64,000 bases of DNA from Neoconidiobolus thromboides FSU 785. Lineage: Eukaryota > Fungi > Entomophthoromycota. The translations under genes were made by a program, and so were the position numbers. The stretch spans positions 1 through 64,000 of the forward strand of contig MU626314.1 in the NCBI GenBank assembly GCA_025603075.1, in the 5' to 3' direction. Under the pieces are notes generated by a model. It was not told the DNA's origin. It made no database searches and saw nothing but the letters and a program-made list of their open reading frames with translations. How positions within the stretch are numbered: position 1 is the first letter of the stretch; every line of letters starts with the position of its first letter. Below, one piece after another: positions 1,535 to 45,016 of this stretch.

Positions 1535-2218
1535 TTAATTATAGTTAGTTATAAAATGAATGTTATGTACTCTAGAAGATGGTGAGGGTGAGGTCAAATT
1601 AAAAATCTTTGGCAGTGCGTTAGTAAGGGGTGGTAAATTATCAAGCCTCCTTATGTTCAAGCTTCTTTCATTATTTTGTGAGCTAGGAGACTCAGAAGAA
1701 TATTCTGAACGAGAGTAAATGGAACTAGAAGCATCAGAAATTTGACTAGAGTGGCTTGGTATTTTAACCAAGGTAGGTAAGTCCAAGCTATTTAAACTTG
1801 GAAGTGTAATTTGATTCTTTTTCATTTTATGACAGGATCTTGCAGACTCTGAATATGGGGAAGAGTATGGTTTACGTTGGCTTGATTCTTCTTCAGTGCT
1901 TTGGAATTCATTAAATAAGGGGTGATTATGGAACATGTTTTTACCACCACGAAATTCCCATTGACCACTCTTATTACGAAATAGCACTATTTTCCAATTG
2001 CACTTGCAACGATCACTATTTCTATTGCGCTTCTTTAAAAAATTATCTTTCTTTGAATCAGGGATACCCTCTTTAGAGCAAACAATATAAATAGCAGCCA
2101 ACTTTGAAGTACGGATGCGTATGCTAAAACCACAAGACTTAGCTAGGTTTTGACAAAATAAGATAGCATCTTCAGAAGTTGAGAATGATTTTGAGAAGAT
2201 TGGATAAAAATTTATCAT
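1535..2218 (-). CDS. FAR1/AFT-like (WRKY-GCM1 superfamily) zinc-finger DNA-binding protein, paralog A, 227 aa, intronless
   Basis: Motifs GFSIRIRTSK, IYIVCSKEG, RNRNSDRCKCNW and WEFRGGKNMFHNH give the C..C..HxH ligand pattern of the FAR1 DNA-binding domain; Ser-rich tail; two paralogs nearby. Confidence 0.85.
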   Translation of the reverse strand: MINFYPIFSKSFSTSEDAILFCQNLAKSCGFSIRIRTSKLAAIYIVCSKEGIPDSKKDNFLKKRNRNSDRCKCNWKIVLFRNKSGQWEFRGGKNMFHNHPLFNEFQSTEEESSQRKPYSSPYSESARSCHKMKKNQITLPSLNSLDLPTLVKIPSHSSQISDASSSIYSRSEYSSESPSSQNNERSLNIRRLDNLPPLTNALPKIFNLTSPSPSSRVHNIHFITNYN

Positions 2219-2359
2219 TTTACAAAATTTATTCTGAATTTAAATTATTTTTGAAAAAAAAAAATGATGATTAATTTCAGATTCCAATGCTTAAATAGTA
2301 TTACCTTTGATTCAATCTCTGAGATTAATCCTTAGATCGAACTAATTTTAGACATAACG

Positions 2360-2367
2360 AATCGATC
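2360..2367 (-). promoter_or_regulatory. GATCGATT motif about 142 bp upstream of paralog A
   Basis: AATCGATC on the + strand; the same oriented 8-mer lies upstream of paralogs B and C. Confidence 0.5.
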
Positions 2368-4752
2368 TTAAAAATTTGGAGTTTTTGGTTGGTTCCTGTC
2401 AAATTACTCAAAATTACTTCACTATTATAAATAATAAACTTTAATAGAATATATAATTCATTTATCTATTAAATACTACAAAGAATATTGTATATTTTAG
2501 TTTCTACCCTTTATAAATATTACAATAACATACATTCTTAAAACTCAAGCTTGTATAATACCAAGTTGTAAGTTTTAACACTTATTAAATTAAATATTTC
2601 AAACTCCTGAGGGGACACAGTTGGTTAGTTATTTTAATTAAAAATATGCTGATAATAAAAGGTTACATCTTATTGGAATAAATGTTGTAATCATTAGCTA
2701 ACAGCTTTAGGGGAAATCTCACAGCTCCTAAAAATTGAATCGCGAGGATCGAAAAATTTCAATTAAATTTCGATTTTAAGATTCACTCTAAATCCATAAT
2801 TTTTCCACCCCATACTAAGACAAAAACAATGGTCCAAAGAATTTACCTTTTATGGGTTATTTGAATTTTTCTAGATTGAAGCAATCATTACATTTTTAAT
2901 TAAATGTAATAAATAATCAATTACGTTAAGGATAAAAGTACAAATAGTAACCCTGGAAGTCATGTAAGCATTAAATCCCTTATATTATCCCATACTTCAA
3001 TATTCTATATAAAGATCATACAAAAATCCGTGTGATTGATAAATTGAACTAAAGAATCATGTGTAATTGAGCTTCCTTTTACCTCTATTATACTTTATAG
3101 AAGTTTGAAACTTATTAGATTATATAAGCTATTAACTGAAAATATAGGGATCTCACGTTATGATTTGATCTTCTTAGGTTTCATTCTTATCTCTTAAATC
3201 TTTGCAGTGTTGTTTAAAACAGAACTCAGATCTTCATAGTTGTTTAGAGATTGTTATTAGCTTAAATAATTTTGTTAGATTATTATAATGTTACAATAAT
3301 TTATATACCTTGCTATATTACAGAATAGCTTATTATTTATGAACTAGAACTTTTTTATAGGATTAAGGTGGTTGAATAATTTATTCAATTGCTCAATAAA
3401 TAAAGGTGTCTAACCTTACAATTTTTTATTTCACAATTTCATTAGTGCCTGTTTTAATGCCTTTATTAAAATTGATAGCTTAACCAAAAGTTGTAATGAT
3501 TATATTAGTTCTATCTGAATCTAAGATTAACCTTACTATATAGTAAAAATAAATATAATGTTATAAAGATGAATTAGAACCATCGTAAATAAAATAGCAA
3601 AGCAAATACAATAATGTTGATTTACTAGTACTACATTATAAAAAACAATATAAGTAATTCATTACATTTGTTTTACTGCTATGAAGATCAATTTGAAGTT
3701 TTTTATTAAATGAACTCAAGTTGTATGATTTTTAAGACAAGCTCTGCTTTTTGATAGAACTTTTGCCCCAAGTTGTTTTATTAAAAAATTATTGGGCAAA
3801 TAAAGCAAAATAATGAATTTAAGCAAAATTTTGGAGTAAATCTATTAAATTAAAAAATTATAGTAGAGATTATAGAATGAAGCAATTTACGGACTATAAA
3901 TATTCAATTAGATTGAATTAAAGACTTCAAAGATCTAGAATTACATATTTATTAAATATCTATAATACTTATAAATCGACATTTTTAATAGATAGATTAG
4001 CTACATTTTCTTAGTGAAGTAGTATCATATATATAACTATATAAATTCCCTTTACTAAATTTAATCCACACCATGCTTTACCCCCTTTTTTATATTTATC
4101 ATCAGAAATCGTATTTATCTTATTGGCTTATTTCTTACCAAAATGGCATGGTAAATATTTTCAGTTTTATTATTTAAAGTTACTTAATTTTACAATTATA
4201 CAACCACTTAGATTGCCCAAACATGCTATAGTGTTGTTAGTATTAATTACGAAATAGATAATTAAGTTGAAAACTAAACAAATAATCATGCCAATCGATT
4301 TACAATAATACACTCAAATCAGAATAAACTTGGTATTATCACTATCAGTTTAATGAAAAATTGTATTTTTAATGATCAACTAACACTTAGAAGTAAGAAA
4401 AATAAGATTGAATCACAAAAAATTAATAAAAAATACGATGCTTTTTAAAAAAGAGATCTGAACAACTACTTTAATAAAAAGATTAACTAACTGGGTTCTT
4501 AACACCTACTTAACTACCCACCCACCAATTATTTCTCAATCATGATTTAGTTATCTTTTTGTTGACATTAAAGGAATGAATTGAGATTAGATTATTAGCC
4601 AATAAATTGAGTTTATTTTTAATTTAGATAAGGTTTAATTGCACCAAAAATGATGAGTTAAAAGCCTTAAGTAGGTAAAGTAGGAAGGTGGTAAAAAAGA
4701 CAGAAAGTAGAAACAAAGGTCGAAGTTTATCGAGTTTTTTCTAAAAAAATAC

Positions 4753-4760
4753 GATCGATT
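4753..4760 (+). promoter_or_regulatory. GATCGATT motif about 151 bp upstream of paralog B
   Basis: acGATCGATTac; shared with A and C. Confidence 0.5.
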
Positions 4761-4910
4761 ACCTACAACTCCATTAATGAAGAAAATAGGGAGTTTAAAT
4801 CTGTTAATTTATTATTAAAGAAAAATATATATAAACAATCAAAAAGTATATTTTTAAAATTATAATTTTAATTAAATTCGATTTTTTATAATATTTATAT
4901 ATTTAAAAAT

Positions 4911-5534
4911 ATGTATCGTTTCAATAACATTTTAAATAAAAAATTTGCTACTTCCCAAGAAGCTATTGAATACTGTCAATACTTGGCTCATGCATGTGGG
5001 TTTTCTGTAAGGATAAGAACTAGTAAAGCAACTACCATTTATATTGTCTGTAGTAGAGAAGGAAAACCTGATATGAAGGCTGATTTCGGAAAAAAGAGAA
5101 ATAGAAACAGTGATAGATGTAATTGCCAATGGCGTATTGTTCTATACTATAATGAAGATTTACCAAGGAACATGCGTTGGGAATTTAGAGAAGGAAAATC
5201 TATGGTGCATAATCACTCTGTTTTTAATGAATTAACTTATCCTTCTTATACTTGCACTGAACAAGTTTATAATCAGTCATCGAGCTTTATTTCTAATAAT
5301 CCACATATTACAAACAATAATCAAGCACAAAATTTAAGTTATAATCCATTCGGATATAGAGATTCATCATCAAATTGCACAGGCTCAAGTTCACCTTCGC
5401 CTAATTATCTCTCCACTTATACACTGCCACCTATGGAAAATCAATTGAAATTACCACCTATTCATTGGGAAAACTATAACCCCATGCCTAAAAAGCAATG
5501 CTTACCAAACTCTCTTCAATTTATCCTAAACTAA
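4911..5534 (+). CDS. FAR1/AFT-like zinc-finger DNA-binding protein, paralog B, 207 aa, intronless, divergent from A
   Basis: GFSVRIRTSK, IYIVCSREG, RNRNSDRCNCQW, WEFREGKSMVHNH; Asn/Ser/Pro-rich tail ending SLQFILN. Confidence 0.85.
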   Translation: MYRFNNILNKKFATSQEAIEYCQYLAHACGFSVRIRTSKATTIYIVCSREGKPDMKADFGKKRNRNSDRCNCQWRIVLYYNEDLPRNMRWEFREGKSMVHNHSVFNELTYPSYTCTEQVYNQSSSFISNNPHITNNNQAQNLSYNPFGYRDSSSNCTGSSSPSPNYLSTYTLPPMENQLKLPPIHWENYNPMPKKQCLPNSLQFILN

Positions 5535-6873
5535 TAGCCTATCTTTATTTTGATTTTGTTTCATTGAGTGTTTAATTTATTAAAGTTTTTAATTTGTTTA
5601 TCTTTTATAATTTCGTATGTTTATCTTGTTTAAGTTGTAATGATTAGCTAGTATTAAATTTTAAAGTGTTTTATAAGTTATAAATTGTACACTTGTTTTG
5701 AATAAATAAACACTAGTGGCTAAATCAACAAAATTTAAAAAGTTAGATAATTGTTTATAAAATCAAATGAAAAACTAGTAGATTAGTTTAATAACTAAGA
5801 TTTTATTCTTTTCCTTTGGTTATGATTTTATATCATACTTTTGTATTATAAAAATAATATTACACTATTTTAATTCAAATCCTGACTACTTTGGCATTTT
5901 AAAAATTCTGGTAAAATAAAGTTCAAAGCGTTAAATAGCCCATATTAAAAATATTGAAATAGTAAATTTAATATTACTATTAATAAACTTTAAATATGAG
6001 TTTATCTATTCATGTACAAATATATATTATTAAAACAAAATTAAAAATAACTTTAAAAATAGTAATGTAAGCTTAACTAAAAATCATATACTAGGTCTTG
6101 ATATTTGGATTCTTATTAAATTCGATATTATTATAATATTTTTAGTGAATTAAGCAACTATAATCTTTACAATCTTAAAATTATTTTCTGAATAATTATA
6201 GTCTTTTGGCTTTCTATAGTTGCTCTTTGTCCTTTTGAATTTTTCAATTGAAACAATATAATTTATACTTTTAATCATTTATTCTCTCTAGTAGTTAATG
6301 TTTTATAAGAAATTGTTAATTTGTTTAAATTTTTATTCACAGCTAGCAATTAAATACAGCATCTTCATTAGCTAATATAGCAAAAGGTAGTAGTACAATT
6401 AAACAGTTTAATGATAGTTCTAAACAAAATCCTAACGGCTTTCAACAAAATAGCAAAAGGCTACTAAAAATTAAACATACAACATTAATAAAACTTGAAT
6501 AAAAAACTATTAAATAAACAAGTATAGGTATCATAGATTTTAATAATAATTTTATTATAATTTAAATATATCATATAAACTTTTCAGAGTTTTAATAGAA
6601 TAAAGCCATATATGATGGTTGATGTATTAGATTCTTAAATTATTACTTTTTTTTCATTGTAATATTAATTCTAAAATATATTTTAAAATTCTTATTTTGA
6701 TATGAGTTTTTCAAATCTTGACTAAAAAAGAAGACTATTTAACAATGTTTTTATTTTTTTTTCGATTTTCACTATTAAAACCTTTAATGATATCTATATA
6801 ATATTCTGGATTGTAAGATTTTATCTTAACTGTAATTTGATTCTTCCAGTCTTCATATTAGTAGGAGGGCACG

Positions 6874-6962
6874 ATATGGGGCTGTTTTTTTTTAGTTTCA
6901 TTATTTTTCCATTTTTTAAGCGCTATTTATGTGGAAAAATTGTCAGTAAAATTCTTAAAAGC
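6874..6962 (-). mobile_element. MITE copy M1 (reverse orientation, one end truncated)
   Basis: Reverse complement of the ~105-bp consensus; starts ATATGGGGCTG; core AAGCGCTATTTATGTGGAAAAA. Confidence 0.75.
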
Positions 6963-7069
6963 ATAAGGGGATCTACTTTTTTGTTTAAGAGTTTTATTAA
7001 CAATCTTTCCACTCAAATAGCGCTTAAAAGATGGAAAAAGTGATGAAGCCAAAAAAAACATCACTATAT
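6963..7069 (+). mobile_element. MITE copy M2, followed by a further left-end fragment (7066-7090) that shares its ATAT
   Basis: Core TTTCCACTCAAATAGCGCTTAAAAGATGGAAAAAG; ends AAACATCACTATAT. Confidence 0.8.
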
Positions 7070-7389
7070 GGGGATGTAATTTTGTATTTATAATAATTTT
7101 TTAAATGTCAAAATACTTGTGGATCTTGTCACAATTTACCGAGCATAAAAATCCTACATAAAGCAAGTTTATCAAAGTTAAAGCTGATTAAAACATAGTC
7201 TAACTTAACGTATATTAAATAATAGATAGATAGGTAGATTAAATGAACTGAACGGTTATAAAAATCAATACTGGACTATAAAGTCAAATACAAAAGCAAT
7301 AGCCAAACAATAATTTCTTTATTATAGTCATGATCTTGGCATCTAAAATAAGCAAGTTGCTACTTTTGAAAGTGATTTTACTAAAGGGA

Positions 7390-7493
7390 ATATAGGAATG
7401 TATTTTTTTGTTTGAGTTTTATTAACAATTATTCTATTCAAATAGTACCTGAAAAATGGAAAAAGTGATAAAATCAAAAAAATGCCCTCATAT
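7390..7493 (+). mobile_element. MITE copy M3
   Basis: ATATAGGAATG...GCCCTCATAT with a diverged core. Confidence 0.7.
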
Positions 7494-8909
7494 GACAAAC
7501 TTGGGTACACTTTTTACTTGATAACTTAGTTGAAATTTTGTTCAAGTTTTGAAATATTTAAAAAGTGAGTAAAACCGAGAAAAAAAATTCTTATGCAGAT
7601 TATCACAAACACATCATAGAACTTCTCCTTTAAATTTATTGCTACTATCGGTTTTACTCCTAATATTTAATTTTAAATATAAGTATACAGCTACTTTTCT
7701 AGTAAATAAACACTAAAGGAACTGACAAAAGCAAAATACCAATCAAAACAAATCGCATATGGTTTCAAACCCATGGTTTTAATAGAAACATACATGGGGC
7801 ATGTAATTTGTTTTTTATTTGTCACTAAGTAGATTTATCATAATTTTATGTTTATTCTAATAAGAACCTTTTAACTTCATTAAAAGTTTGGAATAAAACT
7901 TCATTCTAATTATTGGTAACAAATTAAAAAATATAAAGATAAATAAATTTTGTTTTAAATTTGAATTTGCATTATTTAACAATTTAATTAAATAACAACT
8001 TAGACGCCAATATACTGAAAATCAACACTATTAATCTCTTTGTTTTTATTACTATTAAAATCAAAACGATATTCCTATTTAATAAAGAAAATAAGATTGA
8101 GTTTTTAAAAATTAAAATTAAAATTAAAATTAAAATGTGTGTAATATTCTAATGATAGGATACTAAAATAACAGTTTCAACTTCCAAGTGAAGTTGACAA
8201 AAGTTTAGTTAGTAATTAATTTATTCTCCAATTAGAACAACTTCGTAAAATTTGCCTTATTGTTTTACTGACAACTTATAACCACTTTTATGATTTTTCC
8301 ATATTCCGAAGGCACACCAAATCAATTATCGCCGATTTGTAGGTTTGCTAGCTATTATTGGTTTTCTACTAAGTAAAAAAGTTGTCATATAAAAAATTAG
8401 CTGTTCTAAAAGAGCTTGTTTTAACTTCAAACTTGAAATTAATCCAGCCATTTAATCACTTTATTTTTCGTCATTTCAAGTTTATTTTCAAAAAGCTATT
8501 CGTAATAAAAGCTTATAATGAATTGAACTCATTTAAAACATGGAGTAGGGGATGAAAATAAGGAGAGAGACAACTTTTAATTTTAAAAATTACTATTTAA
8601 ATTTATTTATTTATTTCTTTCTAAATAATAAATAGCAATATAAGAATTCTCACTAAAAATAATAACGTAAAATAATAACCCAAAGCTATATACTATTGCA
8701 ATTTATTGAACATAATAATGTTATTTTCCACTTTTATATCATTTTACCATGATGAAGTAAGTGATTAACTATGTGTGATAATTATTTCATTTAAGTGTTT
8801 TTTATCAAATGAAATTTAAGTATAGTTATTATTTATAATTTGGGACTATTACCTATATAAGGTAAAGGTACCCTAACTAAGTTAGATGGTAGGATACTTC
8901 AAACTCATC

Positions 8910-8917
8910 GATCGATT
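8910..8917 (+). promoter_or_regulatory. GATCGATT motif about 218 bp upstream of paralog C
   Basis: catcGATCGATTtg; shared with A and B. Confidence 0.5.
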
Positions 8918-9134
8918 TGAATGATAAAGAAAGTAGGATGAAATTTGGGATTCCGATGGAATTAGAAAAAAAAAAAAATAATTCAGATCATAAAACAAAA
9001 AATCCTCGATTCTACTAGCTTCCTCTCTCTTTACTTTTAAATTATTCTTTAAAATTTTCAATTTCGAAATTAAAAAAGATTCAAACTAAATATTCAAGCT
9101 ATTCTATTTCATTTTATTAACTTAATTTTTCATT

Positions 9135-9893
9135 ATGGATAAATTAAATGTCATCTACAAGTGTAAATATAATACCTCCCAAGAAGCCATTGAGCACTGC
9201 CAACTCTTGGCTCATTGTATCGGGTTTAGCATCCGTATCCGTACCTCCAAAGCAAACACCATCTATATCGTATGTTCCAGAGAAGGAAAACCAGAGCAAG
9301 ATAAACCTATTAACAGACGCCGTAACCGATTCAGTGACCGTTGTGAGTGTCACTGGAGAGTTGTGCTTTTTAATGATAGTCATCTGAACCCTAATAATAA
9401 ATGGGAATTCAGAGCTGGTAAATCTATGGTACATAATCATTCTTTATTAACTAGTAAAAATAGCCCCAATAAAGGGGTTAATACTATATTAAAGAGATAC
9501 CCATTCAAACTCATACCTCAACCTCCTATATCTAATACAAATTTACCATCTTTGAGTACAATATTAAATGAAATGCCCTATCATCGTGAAAACAATAAGA
9601 TGGCTTATAACAAAGACCATTATAACAACGATCCCATTGAAATAAATTATAGTTGTCCTAGTACTGAGGGTACTATCAATGCTTTTAACTCACCAGTTGA
9701 AAAGACGTTATGCGATAAGTCCATGCTTACCTTGCCACCTTTATTCACAAGTGAAAAGGCATGCTTTTCTATTAACAATAACTTTCATCAACTTCCTATT
9801 CAAAATTTTAAACAGTTTGGTGAGATCATGTCGTTAGACTTATATCGTGAACGCTCTAGAACATATCCTACAATCCAAGATTTATTAAATTAA
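9135..9893 (+). CDS. FAR1/AFT-like zinc-finger DNA-binding protein, paralog C, 252 aa, intronless
   Basis: GFSIRIRTSK, IYIVCSREG, RNRFSDRCECHW, WEFRAGKSMVHNH; tail ends TIQDLLN. Confidence 0.85.
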   Translation: MDKLNVIYKCKYNTSQEAIEHCQLLAHCIGFSIRIRTSKANTIYIVCSREGKPEQDKPINRRRNRFSDRCECHWRVVLFNDSHLNPNNKWEFRAGKSMVHNHSLLTSKNSPNKGVNTILKRYPFKLIPQPPISNTNLPSLSTILNEMPYHRENNKMAYNKDHYNNDPIEINYSCPSTEGTINAFNSPVEKTLCDKSMLTLPPLFTSEKACFSINNNFHQLPIQNFKQFGEIMSLDLYRERSRTYPTIQDLLN

Positions 9894-11363
9894 GTGTATA
9901 TAGGTGGTTGATTATCTTCTCAGTTAATTATGGTGGCTATTGATAGGAAATAAATTTATGTGCCCGTTGCCATTTTTTCAAAATAAAATATATCTTTTTC
10001 TATACATGTGCTAACGCTTTTTATTAAATTTATTTTTTGTAAATGTACTTTAATGCTTCAATAATTTTTTTGATAAAAATGTGATCTGAAAGTTTTCTCC
10101 TCGTATTTTTAATGAATCATGTTATTGGTTTAATTACGAAGAAAAGGAATCGGATCTTAAAAACATTAAACTTACAAAGTGAGTATTTGCTTATCGTAAA
10201 AATTAGATCAACATAAACCAATCAAATAACTTGGCTATACCTTGAGATTTGTTATTGTAATTGTTCTATCAAATTAAACTGGTTTTATTTTCGTTTTTTG
10301 TTTCTTTTATGAAAAACTTAGCTTAGCTTTCATCATAAGAAACAAAGTGAAAATATTTTTTATCATTACAACATAATTATAAAAAAAAGGGTAGTCTCAA
10401 TTAAAAGTTGCCATTTTCTTTAACCTCTTTTTCTAAATTTATAATTTCTACCCTTTATTAAATCAAATAGGTTTATCAAAATCTATTCTCAAATAGCTTA
10501 TCCTCGCTTGATCTTTTTATAATTTTTTGATTATTAGATTATACATTAAATGCTCAATTCCTGTATAATATCTGAACACTTTATATATATTATAAAGAAA
10601 TAATTATAAAAAAGGAGTGTTATCCATGATTTATCAACTTCTATCGAATAACTTATCCTTTAATAAATCGCATATTTGCAAAACTTGTTTTATAATGTAT
10701 TGACATTTTAGAATATGCTTGTATTGATGACCATCTAAGTATAAATCCCAAGATTTTCATGCAGCAATTAATAGTTGTCCAGTTTTATATCCAAACTTAC
10801 ATGTGGCTTGCATTATACTCAATTTTAAAAAAATACATTAAAAAGCTGACTTTGAAATTGTAAATATATTACTAAAAGGGAATTACCATAAAATAAGCAT
10901 AAGCTATCTGATATGAAAATAGATTGCGTTGATAAAAGGTTACATTTATTTATTAACATCAAACCAAAGTCTATATAAAACCTTTGGGGAACAGTATCTA
11001 TTATTAGAATAAAGAGTTTGAGTATAATAAGTTGAAAATTCTGCATACTTGATTCAAATGAAGCAGAGTTTATTTGAAAATAGTTTTTGGAGCTGTTTAC
11101 TCAATAATCGCATCATTGCTAATACTTTTAGGTTCAAAATTTCATTTGTGATAAAATTTGAAACTGTCATATAGAGGGATATCTAAGTTAGTTTTATCTT
11201 TATCTAATTTTTAAATATTTTGTATTTTAGAAACTTTACTTAACTTTATAAAAGTAAATTTTTTATCAAAAAGTAAAATACTTAACAGTTTTGAGTTATT
11301 TTACTATAGTACATATTATAAATCAGTAGAGTTTTTATTAAATTCAATAAAAATTGCTATATT

Positions 11364-11827
11364 TGTGAAATCTGGTACTCAGGGTTTGGAGTCAAGAACA
11401 GCTATTGCTGGGTTGACTACACTATAAGTCGAAAGGTCTTAGTTTATGTGACTAAGATAGACTTGGATTATGAGGAATAGCACGTAATAGGTTACAAGCT
11501 ATATAAGACAAATAGAATAGACAATACTAATGTAAAACCTATGTAAAATACTATTAAGAAAACTTAGTGGCTTTATTAAATGTTCGAGATATCAGGGATT
11601 AATTCAGTTAAAAAGCCTCGAACTACTATACTCTGTAAACTGTTTTATACTCTGAAAAGTATAAATATCAAAATGAGAGGATAATATTCTTTTGGATGGA
11701 GCTAGAAATCCTCATAACAAATCAAACTAAGAATGTGGGATTGATTTTCTCTGAACTCGAGAACACAACAGCTTAGGCGATTGTTATGTTATACTTAACC
11801 ATGGGACTGACAAAGCGATATTTCACA
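11364..11827 (+). mobile_element. Solo LTR copy 2 (464 bp)
   Basis: TGTGAAA...TTTCACA termini; homologous to 1-457 and 20698-21160. No TSD (flanks are ATATT and GGCAA). Confidence 0.85.
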
Positions 11828-12089
11828 GGCAATACTACTGTAAAATCTGTAAAATATTATCAAAAAGATTTACTGGCTATACTAAAGGTACAATATCAGG
11901 GAACAATTCAATTAAAGAGTCTCAAGTTATGTTGAAGAATCTCTTTTATACTCCAGCAAGTATGGATATCAAAATGAGAGGATAGTATTCTTTGCGATGT
12001 GAAGTTAGAAGTTCTCACAGTAAATCAAAATCAAAGGTTCAGGATCAATTGTGTCTGGACTCAAGAACATAACGACTTAAGTGACTATT
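11828..12089 (+). mobile_element. Older, diverged fragment of the same LTR family abutting copy 2
   Basis: Shares ATATCAGGGAA, CTCTTTTATACTCC and ATATCAAAATGAGAGGATA with the 3' half of the LTR; both termini are missing. Confidence 0.7.
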
Positions 12090-12195
12090 ATATGGAGACC
12101 TATTTTTTTGTTTAAGAGCTTTACCAACAATTTTTCCACTCAAATAGCGCTTAAAAGATGGGAAAAGTGATGAAGCCAAAAAAACACCCCCATAT
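12090..12195 (+). mobile_element. MITE copy M4
   Basis: ATATGGAGA...ACACCCCCATAT; intact core TTTTTCCACTCAAATAGCGCTTAAAAGATGGGAAAAG. Confidence 0.8.
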
Positions 12196-13354
12196 AATCA
12201 ATCATGGAGCTAACAAATACAACTGGTAATAGTGCTATTTATTAGTTTTTGTTTTTTACTTTATCGTGAAATTGTTTAAACATTTAATAGAAATAATATA
12301 AAGCATATAATTAAAAAAATTAATTATTTAAAAAAACAATCAAAATAAATATTTTAATAAAAAATTAATTTCAAACTTTCTAAATTTAACTAGTCACATG
12401 TTATAGACTTACAAATTCAAAAACTTAAACTTTGGATTAATTTCTAGATAAATTCTGAAACCAATTAAGATATCCCCATATACTACTGTATGTTAAATAT
12501 AGCCAGTTTGTTTATTGACAATAGCAAGGATAAGCAATTTATAATCAGATAAACATTAGCAACTTTAATGTATTGCTAAATTTTATATTGATAGTAGGTT
12601 GTTTGAGATATAAAAAATATAAAAATAAAGGATATTATATATTTAGTTACAAACAAATTATCCTAAATAATATAAGGATGCACCACAGGCTCTATTTTAT
12701 AGGATGTTTAATCCCAATAGCTTATTGTTTATTATAGCTAGTAATAATAATTTGATGAAAAAACCTCTTAACTTGGATAATAATATGAACATTGGTATAA
12801 GCGTTACTGAATATAAAGGTATAGGATTAGGTAATAAATTGACTCTCTAGCGGATACATGGTAATATTCAAGACGGAAAAAAAGAAACCTCTTTATTTTA
12901 GTACATTTTATATGGCTCTTAAAAAGTTCTGGCATTATCAAGGAAAATATAAGCTAATATTTGAAATTAAATTAACTAGTAAATAACATTGAATACCACT
13001 ATCGGTAATTGAAGTATATAACTTTAGATAATAAATTTCTATTTTTTATTACAAATTTATTTTATCTTAATAAAAGCGCTTTTAATATAATCCCTTTTAA
13101 AATATATAAGTACCAATCATTAACAATATAGCTTTAAATTATCATGAATCGTAAAAGATATTCATATTCCATGTATATGTAAAATAAGATCCTATTAATT
13201 ACTCTGCATTTGGATTATAACTTAAATCAAGTAATGTTTTTGAACACTATTTACATTGCTCTAGAAAATTATACTCATTTTAATAAGCGGCTCAGTCAAA
13301 ATAGATTCAAATGAAAGATAGCTATTGAGCATGTAATAGATTATATGATGTAGC

Positions 13355-22342: not shown

Positions 22343-23029
22343 ATGGTTCTGAAATTAATTTCACTAACTTTCCTACTTTCCACGATCTCCGCTTTATCTA
22401 TAATCCCTAATATTGGATCCATCTCCCTTCTCAATTCCTTGGAGACTTCATTACCAACTGATTTCTGTCGTCATACTCTATCCCATTATAACCCAAGTCT
22501 TGTGGCTTTAATATTCAATTTAACTTCTGGAGAATGTAACTCTTGTTTTAAAGTGACTAATAATAATGGGAAATCAATGTATGTGAGGGCTATAGGGAAA
22601 GCAGAGAGTGGTATTAAGGTGAGTGAGGAAGTGTTTGAAAAATTAGTTGATGGAAATGAATCAAAATTTCAAGTGAAATGGGAAAAAGCAAATGATAAGA
22701 AATGTAATATGATGGATAAAATAGGGGATGGAAGGAAGTATAAAAATCGTGGAATGAGAGAGAGGGCTAAGAATGAAGTTGATAATGATGGGAATGATGT
22801 GATTGTTGTTCATATTCAATCGAAATCATTGGTGAAGATTAAATATATGGGAATCGATGATAGTGAGAGTGCTGGTAAAGATAAGGATGATAAGGCTATG
22901 AAATTAGGACTTCGCAATAGTAAACCAGAAGAAGGAGATAATGAAAATAATTTGATTTATCAAGAGTTACCAAAAATTAGTGGCATTAGGAATACTCGAA
23001 TTGATATTAAATTCATATTTGATGAATAA
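22343..23029 (+). CDS. Secreted protein with a degenerate RlpA-like double-psi beta-barrel (expansin/loosenin-like) domain and charged tail, 228 aa
   Basis: Signal peptide; GECNSCFKVTNNNGKSMYV...SEEVFEKL...VKWEK pattern resembles DPBB, but the usual Asp residues are absent. Confidence 0.6.
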   Translation: MVLKLISLTFLLSTISALSIIPNIGSISLLNSLETSLPTDFCRHTLSHYNPSLVALIFNLTSGECNSCFKVTNNNGKSMYVRAIGKAESGIKVSEEVFEKLVDGNESKFQVKWEKANDKKCNMMDKIGDGRKYKNRGMRERAKNEVDNDGNDVIVVHIQSKSLVKIKYMGIDDSESAGKDKDDKAMKLGLRNSKPEEGDNENNLIYQELPKISGIRNTRIDIKFIFDE

Positions 23030-28087: not shown

Positions 28088-28962
28088 TCATTATAATTAT
28101 GATTATGTTAATAAACTAATCTTGTTTTAATAGTATGAACAATTAACACAAATAGCAGATCAAGAATATAGTCAAATTAATGAGATATTATTAAATGATT
28201 TACCTAAATTGTTTGATTTAAAAAATGAATTTTTATATCCAATATTTATAATAAGTTTTCAAATACAACATCAAGTTAGTAGTATTTATTTTGAATCTAT
28301 GAGTCAATTAAATAAATTAAATCAATTAGATTGGAACACAAGTCCAATACAAGGCTTTGAACTAAAAAAACAAAATTATGAGCATTTATTTACTAAAATT
28401 GATTTCTTATCTAATTCTATTGGTCGTAAAGCAAGTTCTAATTTTATGGATCGATTAAAAGCAAAATCCGAAGAATCAAATAGTAGATTATCAATTAATA
28501 ATGAAAAAGATAACAATTTAAGTGGTCATCGTAACCGATTTGGGTCTATCTCTACAACAACTTCTAGTAATAATAATAGCAATAATAGTTTATTAGTACC
28601 AAAATCATTATCTCATCAACGATCTGTATCTAATCCAATTAATTTACAACCCCCACCAGCTTATAATTTAAGTGCACCAACTTCACCTATATTAAGAAAA
28701 GCACCACCACCACCTGCACCTAAATTACCTAAAGCTAGAGCACTTTATGATTATAAAGCTCAAGAAGTGGGTGATTTGGAATTTATGGAAGGAGATATTA
28801 TTGATGTTATTAAAAAAACTAATAGTAACGAAGATTGGTGGACAGGTAAATTAAAAAGTAAAATTGGGGTATTTCCAGGTAATAAAGAAATAGATTTTTA
28901 TTATTACAGGATAAATATTGATTATATTGTATTCTTTAGCTAATTATGTTGAATTGATTTAA
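27219..28962 (+). CDS. RVS167: N-BAR + SH3 amphiphysin-like protein, multi-exon
   Basis: Spliced N-terminus MSWKGFKKAVDRLP; helical BAR region; Pro-rich linker; canonical SH3 ALYDY..EDWWTG..GVFPANYV. Confidence 0.85.
28044..28086. repeat. (AAT)n microsatellite in an RVS167 intron
   Basis: Direct reading of the sequence. Confidence 0.95.
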
Positions 28963-35281: not shown

Positions 35282-37311
35282 ATGGTTTTAAAGTTAATTT
35301 TATTAACTTTAACTAGAAATTCAATAAATGATATGGTGAAAGTTGATAAAAAGAAATTATTAATTAATAATATGAGATGGGTTAAAGAATATGAAACCAA
35401 AGCAAGGAAAAGTTCGAAAGTATCCTTAAATTCAATAGAAAAGAGTTCATTTAATGTATCGATGGACAACGAGTTCGAAAAACAATGGCTATTGGAACAA
35501 CCGAATTTAAATAATACTGTAAAAATTTATTTAAGATTAAGATCAATTAATTAATTATTTAGAGTGTAGAAACCATTAGTGAAGAAGAACTGAACACATT
35601 GTATAACGAATTATTTCCAAATAATAAGTTGAAACCATCGAAACAGATGTTAGAGGAAGAACTTTTTAGTATTATTGATATTTTAAAAATGAGAAATAAT
35701 AAAATTAGAAAATGGACAAAGGGTATGGTTTATCAAAAGCTACTTACTCTAGCTCAAATAAAAAATAGGAAGGAAATTTCTTTAATATTAATACACAAGT
35801 TTATATTTATTTGCTCAATAGTGAAAAATGAGGAAGCTGCTTTATTAGCTTTAGAAATAATAAATGAAAAGGGAATGCGTATCAATGAAAAGACGTATAC
35901 ACATATGATACAAATATATTCAAATAAAGGAGATTTAGAAAATTGTTTAAAATATTATAAAAGGATGAAAAAGGAAGGCTTGAAGCCTTATGATATGACA
36001 TATTCATTACTCACTAAAGTTTATTCTACATCTGGTAGGCTAGATGAAGCATTTATGATTTATCAAATTATGGAAAAAAAAGGTTTTAATATATCTAAGA
36101 GTACAATGAATTATTTAATTTTAGGTTATATTCAAGCTGGAAAGTTTGATAAAGCATGTGAATTGTTTGACAATATGAGATTTAAAGTTTACCGACCAAA
36201 TATATTAACATATACTATTATGATTAAGGCATGTATTAAACAAAAACTGATTGAAAAAGCATTCGATTTATTTGATTTAATGAAAAAAGATAGAATTGAA
36301 CCTGATTCAATATTTATGAGTAGTTTAATATTAGTTTGCTCTTCTAATAAAGATTATTACAATAAAGCATTGGAGTTATTTGATCAAATTTTGGAATTAG
36401 GATTAGAAATCAATGCACATACTTATGTTGCACTATTGATGAACGCAAGAAGATCAAATGATTTGGGTTATGCACGTAAACTATTTGCCAAATTAATAGA
36501 TTTCAATTTAAATGTAAGAAATATTCGAGTGCCATTACTTAATATATTGGATACTTATTCAACTTACTATCCACTTATTAAAAAAGAAAATAACTATAAA
36601 AGAGAAAATAAATCATTAAATACAGGTGAAGTTATTGAATTGTTAAATGGTGAGCTACCAATAAATAGTGAAGAAATAATTAAAGAAGTAGAACTTATAA
36701 TGATATGGTTTATTAGTCAATATGGGGCTAATCAACTCAAGCATTATAAAATTAAATTATTTCATTCACTGTTGCCTGTACATACAAATTATGGCAATTA
36801 TGAAAGAGCTTTAGAGTTATTTGATAACTATGAATATAAAGAGAATGATCTTTACGTTTTAAATCAAATTATACTTTTATGCTTCAAGTTTGGAAAAAAA
36901 GAAAAGTGTTTTAATTTATATAAGATAATTAATAAAATACTAAGGAGTTTACGATCAAATTCTATATTATCTTCAATAGAAAAAAAAGAATATATGGAAC
37001 AAAATTGTATAACAAATAAACTAGTTTTTGAAACTTATTGTAATTTAATTAATGGATTTTCAAAGTAAGTCGTATATTATAATAAAAATATAAGTTTTAA
37101 TTATTTATTTTGTAGCATAAATGAGTTAGATTTAAGTTTAATGATTTTAAATGAGGCCAATAAAGATAAAACAATCAATAAAAGACTAAAATTATATCAT
37201 TTTAAAGAATTATACATTAATATTCATAAATACGATAAGACGCATTTAAAACCAATAGCATTTGAACTTATACCAGGCCTGAAAAAAGTAATAATGAATG
37301 CTCAGAGATAA
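35282..37311 (+). CDS. Pentatricopeptide-repeat protein, probably mitochondrial, 3 exons
   Basis: Tandem ~35-aa PPR units (TYTHMIQIYSNKGDLENCLKYYKRMKKEGLKP; TYTIMIKAC..AFDLFDLMKKDRIEPD); in-frame splicing at about 35519-35562 and 37066-37116. Confidence 0.85.
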
Positions 37312-44294: not shown

Positions 44295-45016
44295 TTATGA
44301 AAGATAAGCAGCAAGAGCAGCAGCAAAACCAGCAACATCTACTGAAGTAGGGTTGAAAGGAGATTGATCTAAGGAGTAATGGGTGGCCATATAAGTATAG
44401 CAAATCATTGAGAAAGTATGAACAGAGAGTTCATATTTTTCTTTTTTGGCTACACTCTTCAATTCAAACTCCTCTTCTTTTTCCATTTTAATTAATTTTT
44501 GATATTTGATGATAATATTATATAGCTCTACTAAGTTATAAATTAACCATGCTCTACAAGAATATTTTGCCGATAGCATTATAGTTTTTGGACTGACGGG
44601 TAATACTGAGTGAGAGCCTAACCAATAAATATGTTCCAAAGGATAATAAAACAACATGGATACTAATTGTAGTTTCATGGGTAATGTGACATGAGTATTA
44701 TTTGTTAAGGCGCCTTGTAAAGATTTAGCAATTAAAGGTAAACTTCCTCGGAAACGGAATAAAGTACGACTATCACTTATGATTCTAGCTAAGTTCATTA
44801 ATCCAGTTAAATTGGTCATACTTTTTTCACCTACATTGTTCCTAGATTTTAATAAAATTACCATCTTGGTGGAATATTGAATCAACTAAAATAAAAAATA
44901 TTAAACTTTAGTTTATAATTAAATTAAAAAATGAGTACGGCCAAAGCTTTGTCAAATCCTCCAACAGTGTTGAATGCAGCAGTGGCATGGTTTAAGCTAT
45001 CAATTGTATTTTCCAT
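44295..45016 (-). CDS. PEX11: Peroxisomal biogenesis factor 11 family, 2 exons
   Basis: TVGGFDKALA / LIQYSTK; ISDSRTLFRFRGSLP; YYPLEHIYWLGSH; SCRAWLIY. Confidence 0.85.

Follow-up and report, generated by a model that had tools for sequence, protein, structure and literature searches.

Three clustered genes in Neoconidiobolus thromboides for predicted stand-alone FAR1-type transcription factors

In the insert-containing WRKY-GCM1 family, 20 to 70 mostly basic residues separate two conserved cysteines, strand 4 bears a conserved tryptophan and a C-terminal HxH supplies metal ligands (Babu et al. 2006, PMC1702500). MULE transposases use a finger of this FAR1 type to bind DNA ends. Among them are the fungal elements Hop and Mutyl, whose insert-type finger belongs to the same superfamily as the domain described below (PMC1702500). 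Saccharomyces Aft1/Aft2 (Rcs1) and Candida Rbf1 are stand-alone fungal transcription factors of the insert type. The plant proteins FAR1 and FHY3 carry MULE and SWIM domains, and Arabidopsis FRF1 to FRF4 have the FAR1 DNA-binding domain alone, without a transposase core or SWIM finger (PMC6000157). FAR1-type proteins that possess only the DNA-binding domain form an established category (Babu et al. 2006, PMC1702500; plant FRF1-4, PMC6000157).

Here we describe three genes of this category in a 64,000-nucleotide stretch of DNA (the window) from Neoconidiobolus thromboides FSU 785. This species is an insect-associated fungus. Gene A (1535-2218, minus strand) encodes 227 amino acids, gene B (4911-5534, plus strand) 207 and gene C (9135-9893, plus strand) 252. 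Each is a single-exon, ATG-started open reading frame for a FAR1-type finger followed by a disordered tail rich in S, P and N, and the list of open reading frames agrees exactly with the coordinates and orientation of the three intact, intronless genes reported originally. Because their N- and C-termini align with those of homologues from other species, the single-exon models are complete. The original prediction had also presented the cluster as the best candidate in this DNA for an undescribed regulatory system. Since the category is known, the three genes do not represent a new kind of system, and we regard their products, by analogy, as predicted stand-alone FAR1-type transcription factors that make up a new subfamily within a kind already known.

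The shared N-terminal domain is predicted to bind DNA and occupies 1910-2218 (minus strand) in gene A, where codons 1-103 form two helices and a four-stranded sheet in the predicted structure. Alignments place it at 4911-5228 in gene B and 9135-9452 in gene C (both plus strand, about 106 codons each). Sharing of a domain had been correctly recognized by eye, but its estimated size and identity (about 95 residues, about 60%) are replaced by about 103 residues with identities of 63% (A-B), 52% (A-C) and 61% (B-C) over 102-106 columns. All of the motifs singled out at that time, GFS[IV]RIRTSK, IYIVCSxEG, RNRxSDRCxCxW and WEFRxGKxMxHNH, are invariant in the alignment of the three proteins. The loop between strands 3 and 4 is four residues longer in gene B than in gene A.

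The Pfam FAR1 profile (PF03101; curated gathering cut-off 28.1 bits) matches all three proteins and is the only Pfam domain found in each. Gene A scores 40.0 bits (E 6.6e-10, residues 21-102), and genes B (30.9 bits) and C (28.8 bits) lie just above the cut-off. A six-frame scan of the 24.6-Mb genome returned only three FAR1 matches, all at this locus (A 41.6, B 31.8 and C 30.3 bits). These scores, together with a fold nearest to the structure of Aft2 bound to DNA, bear out the proposed FAR1/WRKY-GCM1 assignment. The AFT profile (PF08731) had been suggested as a check as well, and it gave no match at E <= 1 in the three proteins, nor any in the whole genome. Classical WRKY membership was considered and rejected: the first strand reads (S)[VI]RIRTSK rather than WRKYGQK, the cysteines are spaced by 23 residues, and PF03106 has no match in the three proteins or in the genome, the genome search having been run without a positive control.

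In gene A, the putative zinc ligands are C47, C71 (or C73), H97 and H99. The 23 residues between C47 and C71 form a K/R-rich insert, KEGIPDSKKDNFLKKRNRNSDR, and both cysteines are invariant in an alignment of 19 family members. W87, located in the predicted strand 87-91, and the H97-N98-H99 triplet are likewise invariant. [quoted passage not shown] The net charge of the domain ranges from +8 to +12 across the three proteins, with gene A at +12.

In an AF2 model of gene A, pLDDT is about 90 over residues 1-100 and the tail is disordered; strands are predicted at 32-37, 43-48, 76-81 and 87-91. According to this model, the domain adopts the four-stranded WRKY-GCM1 fold. The best fold match is the Aft2-DNA structure 4lmg (Foldseek probability 1.00; VIA Z 8.7, rmsd 2.6 A over 75 residues), and the next match scores 5.2. 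Lower matches include the WRKY structures 9m0k (Z 4.6) and 6j4e (Z 4.3) and the GCM structure 1odh (Z 4.0).

Aft1/Aft2 and Rbf1 resemble the three proteins: their N-terminal finger has a basic insert between cysteines and HxH, a transposase domain is missing, and the rest of the protein is long and disordered. However, the structural alignment with Aft has only about 19% identity, and the three proteins lack a PF08731 match, are much shorter (207-252 residues) and have different tail motifs. The iron-sensing Cys-Asp-Cys of Aft was not located downstream of their domain, and their CxC lies inside the finger, in strand 3. The phyletic ranges also differ, with Aft in Saccharomycetales and the present family in Entomophthoromycotina. 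The plant FRFs and FAR1/FHY3 have the Pfam domain PF03101 in common with our proteins, but FRFs are nested in the clearly MULE-derived plant FRS family, while the proteins closest to our three are FAR1-only. Plant matches are also much weaker (E 1e-4 to 1e-7 for P0020), and the MULE and SWIM domains of FAR1/FHY3 are missing from our proteins.

Short homologues of 127-259 amino acids occur in Entomophthora muscae, Massospora and Basidiobolus. E. muscae has at least nine, five of them on one contig, and at the loci checked the homologues of Basidiobolus and of another sample sit amid ordinary host genes. Longer FAR1-only relatives are spread across Mucoromycota and chytrids, so that the family, which had been thought specific to this lineage, has members throughout Entomophthoromycotina and relatives beyond. 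In the tree, the partner of gene C is a homologue from another sample (support 97/95), and an AU test of duplication of the three genes within the Neoconidiobolus lineage gave p values of 0.30-0.65.

Outside Entomophthoromycotina, the closest proteins are uncharacterised FAR1 domain-containing proteins of Mucoromycota (about 112 bits, E about 1e-27 to 1e-20), including Bifiguratus OZJ04347.1, Phycomyces XP_018291837.1 and others from Umbelopsis, Podila and Rhizophagus. They too have an N-terminal finger and no further Pfam domain. Unlike the proteins studied here, they are 370-815 residues long, carry an extra conserved block after the finger (consensus ...WNERRFYNRL.EER) and lack the conserved tail motifs, with none ending in LLN. 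A very long branch (2.76 substitutions per site, 100/100) splits them off. The three genes had been put forward as candidate domesticated transposases, but only three of the 85 nearest outgroup proteins bear a MULE domain, and the two identified ones score about 60-70 bits versus 112 for FAR1-only fungal proteins. A transposase origin, if there was any, is ancient.

Beyond the finger, the 100-150 residues of each tail are disordered and 18-29% identical between the proteins. The view that the tails cannot be aligned needs correcting in part: the short motifs LPS[LI]xSL, LPP[LM] and a C-terminal [FYI][LI]LN are kept. The first motif is LPSLNSL in gene A (1784-1804, minus strand, residues 139-145; local pLDDT up to about 72 in the AF2 model), and its counterpart in gene C is LPSLSTI (9543-9563, plus strand). 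Of 23 core-family proteins, 17 have its general form, LP[SP][LIF]xx[LIV]. Alignments locate the second motif as LPPL in gene A (1625-1636, minus strand, residues 195-198), LPPM in gene B (5424-5435, plus strand) and LPPL in gene C (9732-9743, plus strand). Family comparison identifies the C-terminal motif as DLLN-COOH in gene C (9879-9890, plus strand) and FILN in gene B (5520-5531, plus strand), with the variant HFITNYN in gene A (1538-1558, minus strand). An [LI]LN terminus is found in 15 of the 23 core-family proteins versus 0 of 87 next-tier proteins, and gene B ends in QFILN, as does P0023 of Basidiobolus ranarum.

Between the paralogs, synonymous differences in the domain are saturated (pS 0.72-0.83) versus pN of 0.29-0.31, and omega for the B-C pair is about 0.16. 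Saturated synonymous sites in a conserved domain indicate that the three are old genes under purifying selection.

We consider it likely that A, B and C are old paralogous host genes for small nuclear, sequence-specific DNA-binding regulators of transcription. The label of transcription factor derives by analogy from Aft, Rbf1, FAR1/FRF and WRKY proteins, since our literature search found no characterised protein, whether short or long, in this fungal family. In the mechanism we propose, the four-stranded sheet would be stabilised by a single zinc ion bound to C47, C71 (or C73), H97 and H99. The DNA contacts, like those of WRKY, GCM and Aft2, would be made by the invariant strand 1 (GFS-V/I-RIRTSK) and the basic loop that lies between the two cysteines. 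Since the three proteins have the same sequence in the strand presumed to contact DNA, their recognition sites are probably identical or very similar, and the proteins would probably differ in expression or partners. The tail motifs LPS[LI]xSL, LPPL and the C-terminal LLN would recruit partner proteins.

A candidate cis-element shared by the three genes is the 8-mer GATCGATT, found in gene orientation 149 nt before the ATG of gene A (2360-2367, minus strand), 158 nt before that of gene B (4753-4760, plus strand) and 225 nt before that of gene C (8910-8917, plus strand). Only 1.1% of random triplets of 400-nt segments have such an 8-mer in common. This 8-mer was, however, picked post hoc, shows no genome-wide enrichment (691 copies versus 911 for the reversed control) and does not occur in front of the genes checked in E. 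muscae and Basidiobolus. GATCGAT does occur at -215 upstream of P0019, the sister gene of C in another sample. The 8-mer may reflect a common regulator or mutual regulation among the three genes. An extended version of our reading, which we think unlikely, is that the short Entomophthoromycotina proteins constitute a self-contained module with one DNA specificity (RIRTSK), cross- or autoregulation through GATCGAT(T) and a co-regulator engaged by the motif triad that ends in LLN. If so, expansion in the repeat-rich, behaviour-manipulating E. muscae would suggest a lineage-specific role in infection stages or repeat control.

An alternative that we judge improbable is that the proteins, derived from a transposase DNA-binding domain, bind DNA at transposon ends or other repeats instead of acting as gene-specific transcription factors, and that their tail motifs bring in silencing or chromatin factors, comparable to CENP-B/Abp1 and KRAB-ZNF proteins. 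The genome of E. muscae is very large and repeat-rich, and copy number loosely follows repeat load (at least nine copies there versus three here), but this correlation comprises two genomes. The cluster lies in repeat-rich DNA and the finger type is the one with which MULE transposases bind DNA ends (PMC1702500), yet the genome has no detectable MULE elements to serve as targets, over a long range the closest relatives are FAR1-only proteins rather than transposases, and the flanking repeats showed no match to the shared 8-mer.

We find it very doubtful that the proteins keep the fold and do not bind DNA, acting instead as protein-interaction adaptors or as dominant-negative micro-proteins that titrate a partner. 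Their very short length and the conserved linear motifs of their tails would suit such a function, and competition has been proposed for the plant FRFs that have only the DNA-binding domain (PMC6000157). However, conservation is highest in the basic first strand and the basic insert, the elements through which the superfamily contacts DNA. The domain is also strongly positively charged, and the genome encodes no longer FAR1 protein that could be the object of competition.

Copies of a 464-bp dispersed repeat, arranged as an inverted pair at 93%, bracket the cluster and lie outside the gene family: the left copy (1-445) is cut by the contig start, and the right copy (11364-11827) is inverted and of full length with sharp ends. 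The right copy is 93-97% identical over 460-470 nt to seven other copies by blastn, and the genome holds at least 40 further copies at 92-94%, each with sharp ends. Because this element is dispersed genome-wide, we rejected the pair as cluster-specific TIRs. Gene-level TIRs were not found around the three genes, and Pfam detects neither the MULE core (PF10551) nor the SWIM finger (PF04434) in the proteins, whose reading frames end 100-150 residues after the finger; the reported lack of DDE, SWIM, TIRs and TSDs is thereby upheld, and it separates the genes from Hop and Mutyl, as do the single locus and the evidence of purifying selection. Nor was MULE/Transposase_mut detected anywhere in the 24.6-Mb genome. 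A single weak MULE-type candidate proved to be proline dehydrogenase.

Although the domain is typical of MULE transposases and inverted repeats bracket the cluster, the notion that the genes are remains of a deleted Mutator-like transposon, or cargo between the 464-bp repeats with no host function, is largely refuted and extremely improbable: there are only three copies, all at one locus, the frames are intact and the motif set is invariant despite saturated synonymous sites, homologues with matching termini and tail motifs occur in four other genera, and the flanking element is a genome-wide repeat in a genome free of detectable MULE domains.

Finally, the three genes stand out from their surroundings as islands of 33-35% GC versus 23-24% in the intergenic DNA. 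A Logan contig of 928 nt (SRR27216394) is colinear with window positions 9039-9966, which span gene C, with three differences, and it may represent a transcript.

The window covers the opening 64 kb of contig 57, in an assembly of 24.6 Mb and 799 contigs. The original prediction described three intact, intronless paralogs near its start, and an ORF listing returned exactly these in the proposed positions and orientation: gene A at 1535-2218 on the minus strand (227 amino acids), gene B at 4911-5534 on the plus strand (207 amino acids), and gene C at 9135-9893 on the plus strand (252 amino acids). Only 3 to 13 sense codons separate each ATG start from the preceding in-frame stop, and both the N- and C-termini match up with homologues from other species in an alignment. 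Therefore, we regard the single-exon models as complete. The three ORFs are also GC islands, with a GC content of 33-35% compared to 23-24% for the flanking DNA. Their N-terminal domains (approximately 103-106 residues) are 52-63% identical, the remaining tails share 18-29% identity, and all motifs highlighted in the original prediction are invariant across the alignment of A, B, and C. On the downstream side of the cluster, the window contains ordinary host genes, specifically a cerato-platanin-like ORF (22343-23029), an SH3-domain exon (28209-28943), a PPR protein (35599-37068), and PEX11 (44295-44885), the last of which is 99% identical to N. thromboides K502DRAFT_341559.

Proteins A, B, and C score 40.0, 30.9, and 28.8 bits, respectively, against the Pfam FAR1 profile (PF03101), and thus all exceed its gathering score of 28.1, as had been anticipated. 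The accompanying AFT-like label is not supported by the AFT profile, which has no match in these proteins or anywhere in the genome. No other Pfam family, MULE and SWIM included, yielded a credible match in the three proteins. An alignment of 19 family members was used to build an AlphaFold2 model, in which residues 1-100 are predicted with confidence (block pLDDT of about 88-97 except in a basic insert). The model consists of two helices and four strands, followed by a tail that is predicted to be disordered. In Foldseek, plant WRKY domains rank behind 4lmg, a crystal structure of Aft2 bound to DNA, which is the top match (probability 1.00, E 0.013). A second, independent structural alignment against representatives again placed 4lmg first (Z 8.7, rmsd 2.6 Å, 75 residues), with the next row at Z 5.2, WRKY domains at Z 4.3-4.6, and GCM at Z 4.0. 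The relation to Aft2 exists at the level of fold only, since a profile search of PDB sequences gave nothing real; its sole match, NifH, was set aside as a chance hit.

The insert-containing WRKY-GCM1 family has been defined by a basic insert of 20-70 residues between ligand cysteines, a Trp in strand 4, and an HxH motif (Babu et al. 2006, PMC1702500). All three features are invariant in A, B, and C, in the form of C47, 23 K/R-rich residues, C71, W87, and H97-N-H99, with C73 located two residues past C71. The net charge of the domain is +8 to +12. These proteins are therefore members of both Pfam FAR1 and the insert-type WRKY-GCM1 family. They fall outside AFT proteins, classical WRKY proteins, FRS domesticated transposases, and MULE elements, as one defining feature of each was tested and is absent. 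In architecture and predicted function they resemble Aft1/Aft2 and Rbf1 of yeasts, and they are similar to Arabidopsis FRF1-4 in being composed of a DNA-binding domain without additional domains (PMC6000157).

Relatives were identified by a word-index search and an exhaustive profile search, and they separate into three tiers. The core family (E ≤ 1e-45, 127-259 amino acids) occurs in Entomophthora muscae, Massospora cicadina, Basidiobolus meristosporus, and B. ranarum, as well as in Logan and JGI contigs, and is thus not restricted to this species, in contrast to the lineage-specific family originally proposed. E. muscae carries at least nine members. Five of these (locus tags DSO57_1011889 to DSO57_1011902) are on one 492-kb contig (QTSX02002171.1), where two located members are separated by about 260 kb, and the family may therefore be loosely clustered in this species also. 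After a large score gap, the second tier begins at about 112 bits with Mucoromycota proteins of 370-815 amino acids from genera including Bifiguratus, Pilobolus, Choanephora, Phycomyces, Podila, Rhizophagus, and Umbelopsis. These proteins have an N-terminal finger (the FAR1-type domain) and no other Pfam domain. In the long FAR1-only proteins of Mucoromycota (P0024-P0066), the finger is followed directly by a conserved block, WP..V...I..LA.....T..IR..V...FP...WNERRFYNRL.EER, that has no Pfam match and is missing from the short Entomophthoromycotina proteins. The third tier is made up of chytrid proteins in which the finger is C-terminal. Among next-tier proteins, MULE is present in 3 of 85 and SWIM in 2 of 85, and the two identified MULE bearers (70 and 60 bits) resemble double-finger FRS-type proteins. 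FAR1-only proteins with no transposase domain alongside thus occur widely among early-diverging fungi.

A maximum-likelihood tree sets the Mucoromycota group off by a branch of 2.76 substitutions (100/100) and unites A, B, and C with one E. muscae group and the proteins of Massospora and Basidiobolus in a clade supported at 83/99. Gene C pairs with P0019, a sister protein from another sample (97/95), and support on the inner branches is weak. In AU tests, neither the monophyly of A+B+C (p 0.30) nor that of A+B+C+P0019 (p 0.65) was rejected. Based on this distribution and tree, we conclude that the core family is old and common to the whole subphylum.

The tails of A, B, and C are 42-55% S/P/N/T/Q and are predicted to be disordered, yet they carry three short motifs that recur in different genera. 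In 17 of 23 core members, the motif LP[SP][LIF]xx[LIV] follows the finger at a distance of about 35-45 residues, and LPP[LM] is common in the core family and present in all three paralogs. A C-terminal [LI]LN-COOH is present in 15 of 23 core members compared to 0 of 87 next-tier proteins, and gene B and the B. ranarum homologue P0023 both terminate in QFILN. These three motifs look like partner-binding linear motifs.

The analysis shows what the domain is, its fold, its conservation, how many copies exist, and that transposon features are lacking. We consider it likely that A, B, and C are small, nuclear, sequence-specific DNA-binding regulators. In this reading, strand 1 (RIRTSK), which is invariant, and the basic insert would be brought to DNA by a zinc-stabilized sheet, and the tail motifs may recruit cofactors. 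Given that the putative DNA-contacting strand is common to the paralogs, they probably share one target site and would differ in expression or partners. Two other explanations are less likely. One is a DNA binder directed at repeats, which would fit the repeat-rich DNA in which the cluster lies. The other is an adaptor that does not bind DNA, for which the tail motifs would be suited and against which the conserved basic strand 1 and insert and the positive charge of the domain speak.

The weakest rival is a transposon relic, and several lines of evidence concur that A, B, and C are not a transposon. Genome-wide, the FAR1 profile matches exactly three places, as does a profile of the family itself, and these correspond to A, B, and C. 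Profile scans for PF10551 (MULE) and PF00872 uncovered no transposase in the genome, although fragmented relics could escape such scans, and WRKY and FLYWCH profiles had no genome-wide match in searches run without a positive control, making these weak negatives. The one weak PF10551 candidate, on contig 339, encodes an EF-hand-bearing proline dehydrogenase that is unrelated to this family. An inverted-repeat search found no TIRs around the individual genes. A 445-nt, 93% inverted repeat (1-445 / 11377-11821) was considered as the ends of a composite transposon, a reading that was rejected because the repeat is not specific to the cluster and belongs to a discrete, dispersed 464-bp unit with at least 40 near-identical copies genome-wide.

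Nei-Gojobori comparisons of paralog pairs gave a saturated pS of 0.72-0.83 and a domain pN of 0.29-0.31. Because saturation prevented a proper dN/dS calculation for most pairs, pN is given against pS; the sole pair with a finite estimate has an omega of about 0.16. These values indicate that the copies are old and that the domain is under purifying selection, in agreement with the proposal that these are intact genes rather than deleted transposons. Furthermore, homologues in B. meristosporus and in another sample sit among ordinary genes (nucleoporin, RING, Myb, and sulfur transporter; trypsins, amino-acid transporter, and NAD kinase). The proposed domesticated-transposase origin may apply to this clade: Babu et al. 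argue that transposase ancestry is the ancestral state of the insert-type family in general (PMC1702500), but nothing in the tree or homologue comparison places the A/B/C clade beside transposases.

Positions 9039-9966 of the window are colinear with a Logan contig of 928 nt (run SRR27216394), which has three differences: one upstream of ORF C, one synonymous, and one Ala-to-Thr change. It fits a candidate gene C transcript from another strain. For genes A and B, word-index and profile searches returned no contig apart from the genome's own.

The 8-mer GATCGATT occurs five times in the window compared to 0.95 expected, and three copies precede the ATGs of A, B, and C by 149, 158, and 225 nt, respectively, each in gene orientation. 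In a post hoc test, only 1.1% of triplets drawn at random from 400-nt segments of the window had an 8-mer with three or more G/C in common. A palindrome containing GATCGAT, GATCGATC, is present at -215 from the P0019 ATG in an AT-rich sample (L020 1500-1715, ERR10900026 contig), close in position to the copy at -225 of gene C. Genome-wide, GATCGATT is not enriched (691 copies versus 911 for the reversed control), and, for the genes examined in E. muscae and Basidiobolus, it is missing from the upstream DNA except for one copy at -677. We therefore treat this shared candidate cis-element as a lead rather than a finding. We also infer that A, B, and C may be autoregulated.

Regulation of transcription in Entomophthoromycotina, which include insect-killing and behavior-manipulating fungi, is almost unstudied. 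Our searches of the literature, which covered FAR1 in Entomophthora, Conidiobolus, and zygomycetes as well as PF03101 in fungi, returned no paper on this family, and all family members are named "hypothetical" or "FAR1 domain-containing" in databases. We rate the core family as an undescribed subfamily within a known kind of protein. The advance is one of annotation: a family of hypothetical proteins is assigned a domain and a fold, together with a predicted role and phyletic range. The predicted DNA-binding regulators form a compact family that is easy to test, characterized by a conserved finger and three conserved tail motifs and with three members in a small, tractable genome. Also, the existence of FAR1-only proteins without transposase domains tempers the usual assumption that every FAR1 finger reflects a recent transposase domestication.

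The 464-bp repeat is present as an inverted pair with sharp ends as defined by blastn (1-445 and 11364-11827), where the contig start falls inside the first copy, and a degenerate copy occupies 11827-12091. At least 40 copies with 92-97% identity are present genome-wide, and a first look gave 669 candidates in 24.6 Mb. Based on this copy number and identity, the repeat family looks young and high-copy, and it is probably non-autonomous. Direct and inverted copies of a MITE-like unit, roughly 100 nt long, are also present at 6886-7057, 7388-7482, and 12090-12198, with a back-to-back palindrome among them (6904-6959 / 6984-7039, 88% complementary). Elsewhere in the genome, many copies of the 464-bp repeat are adjoined by copies of this MITE-like unit.
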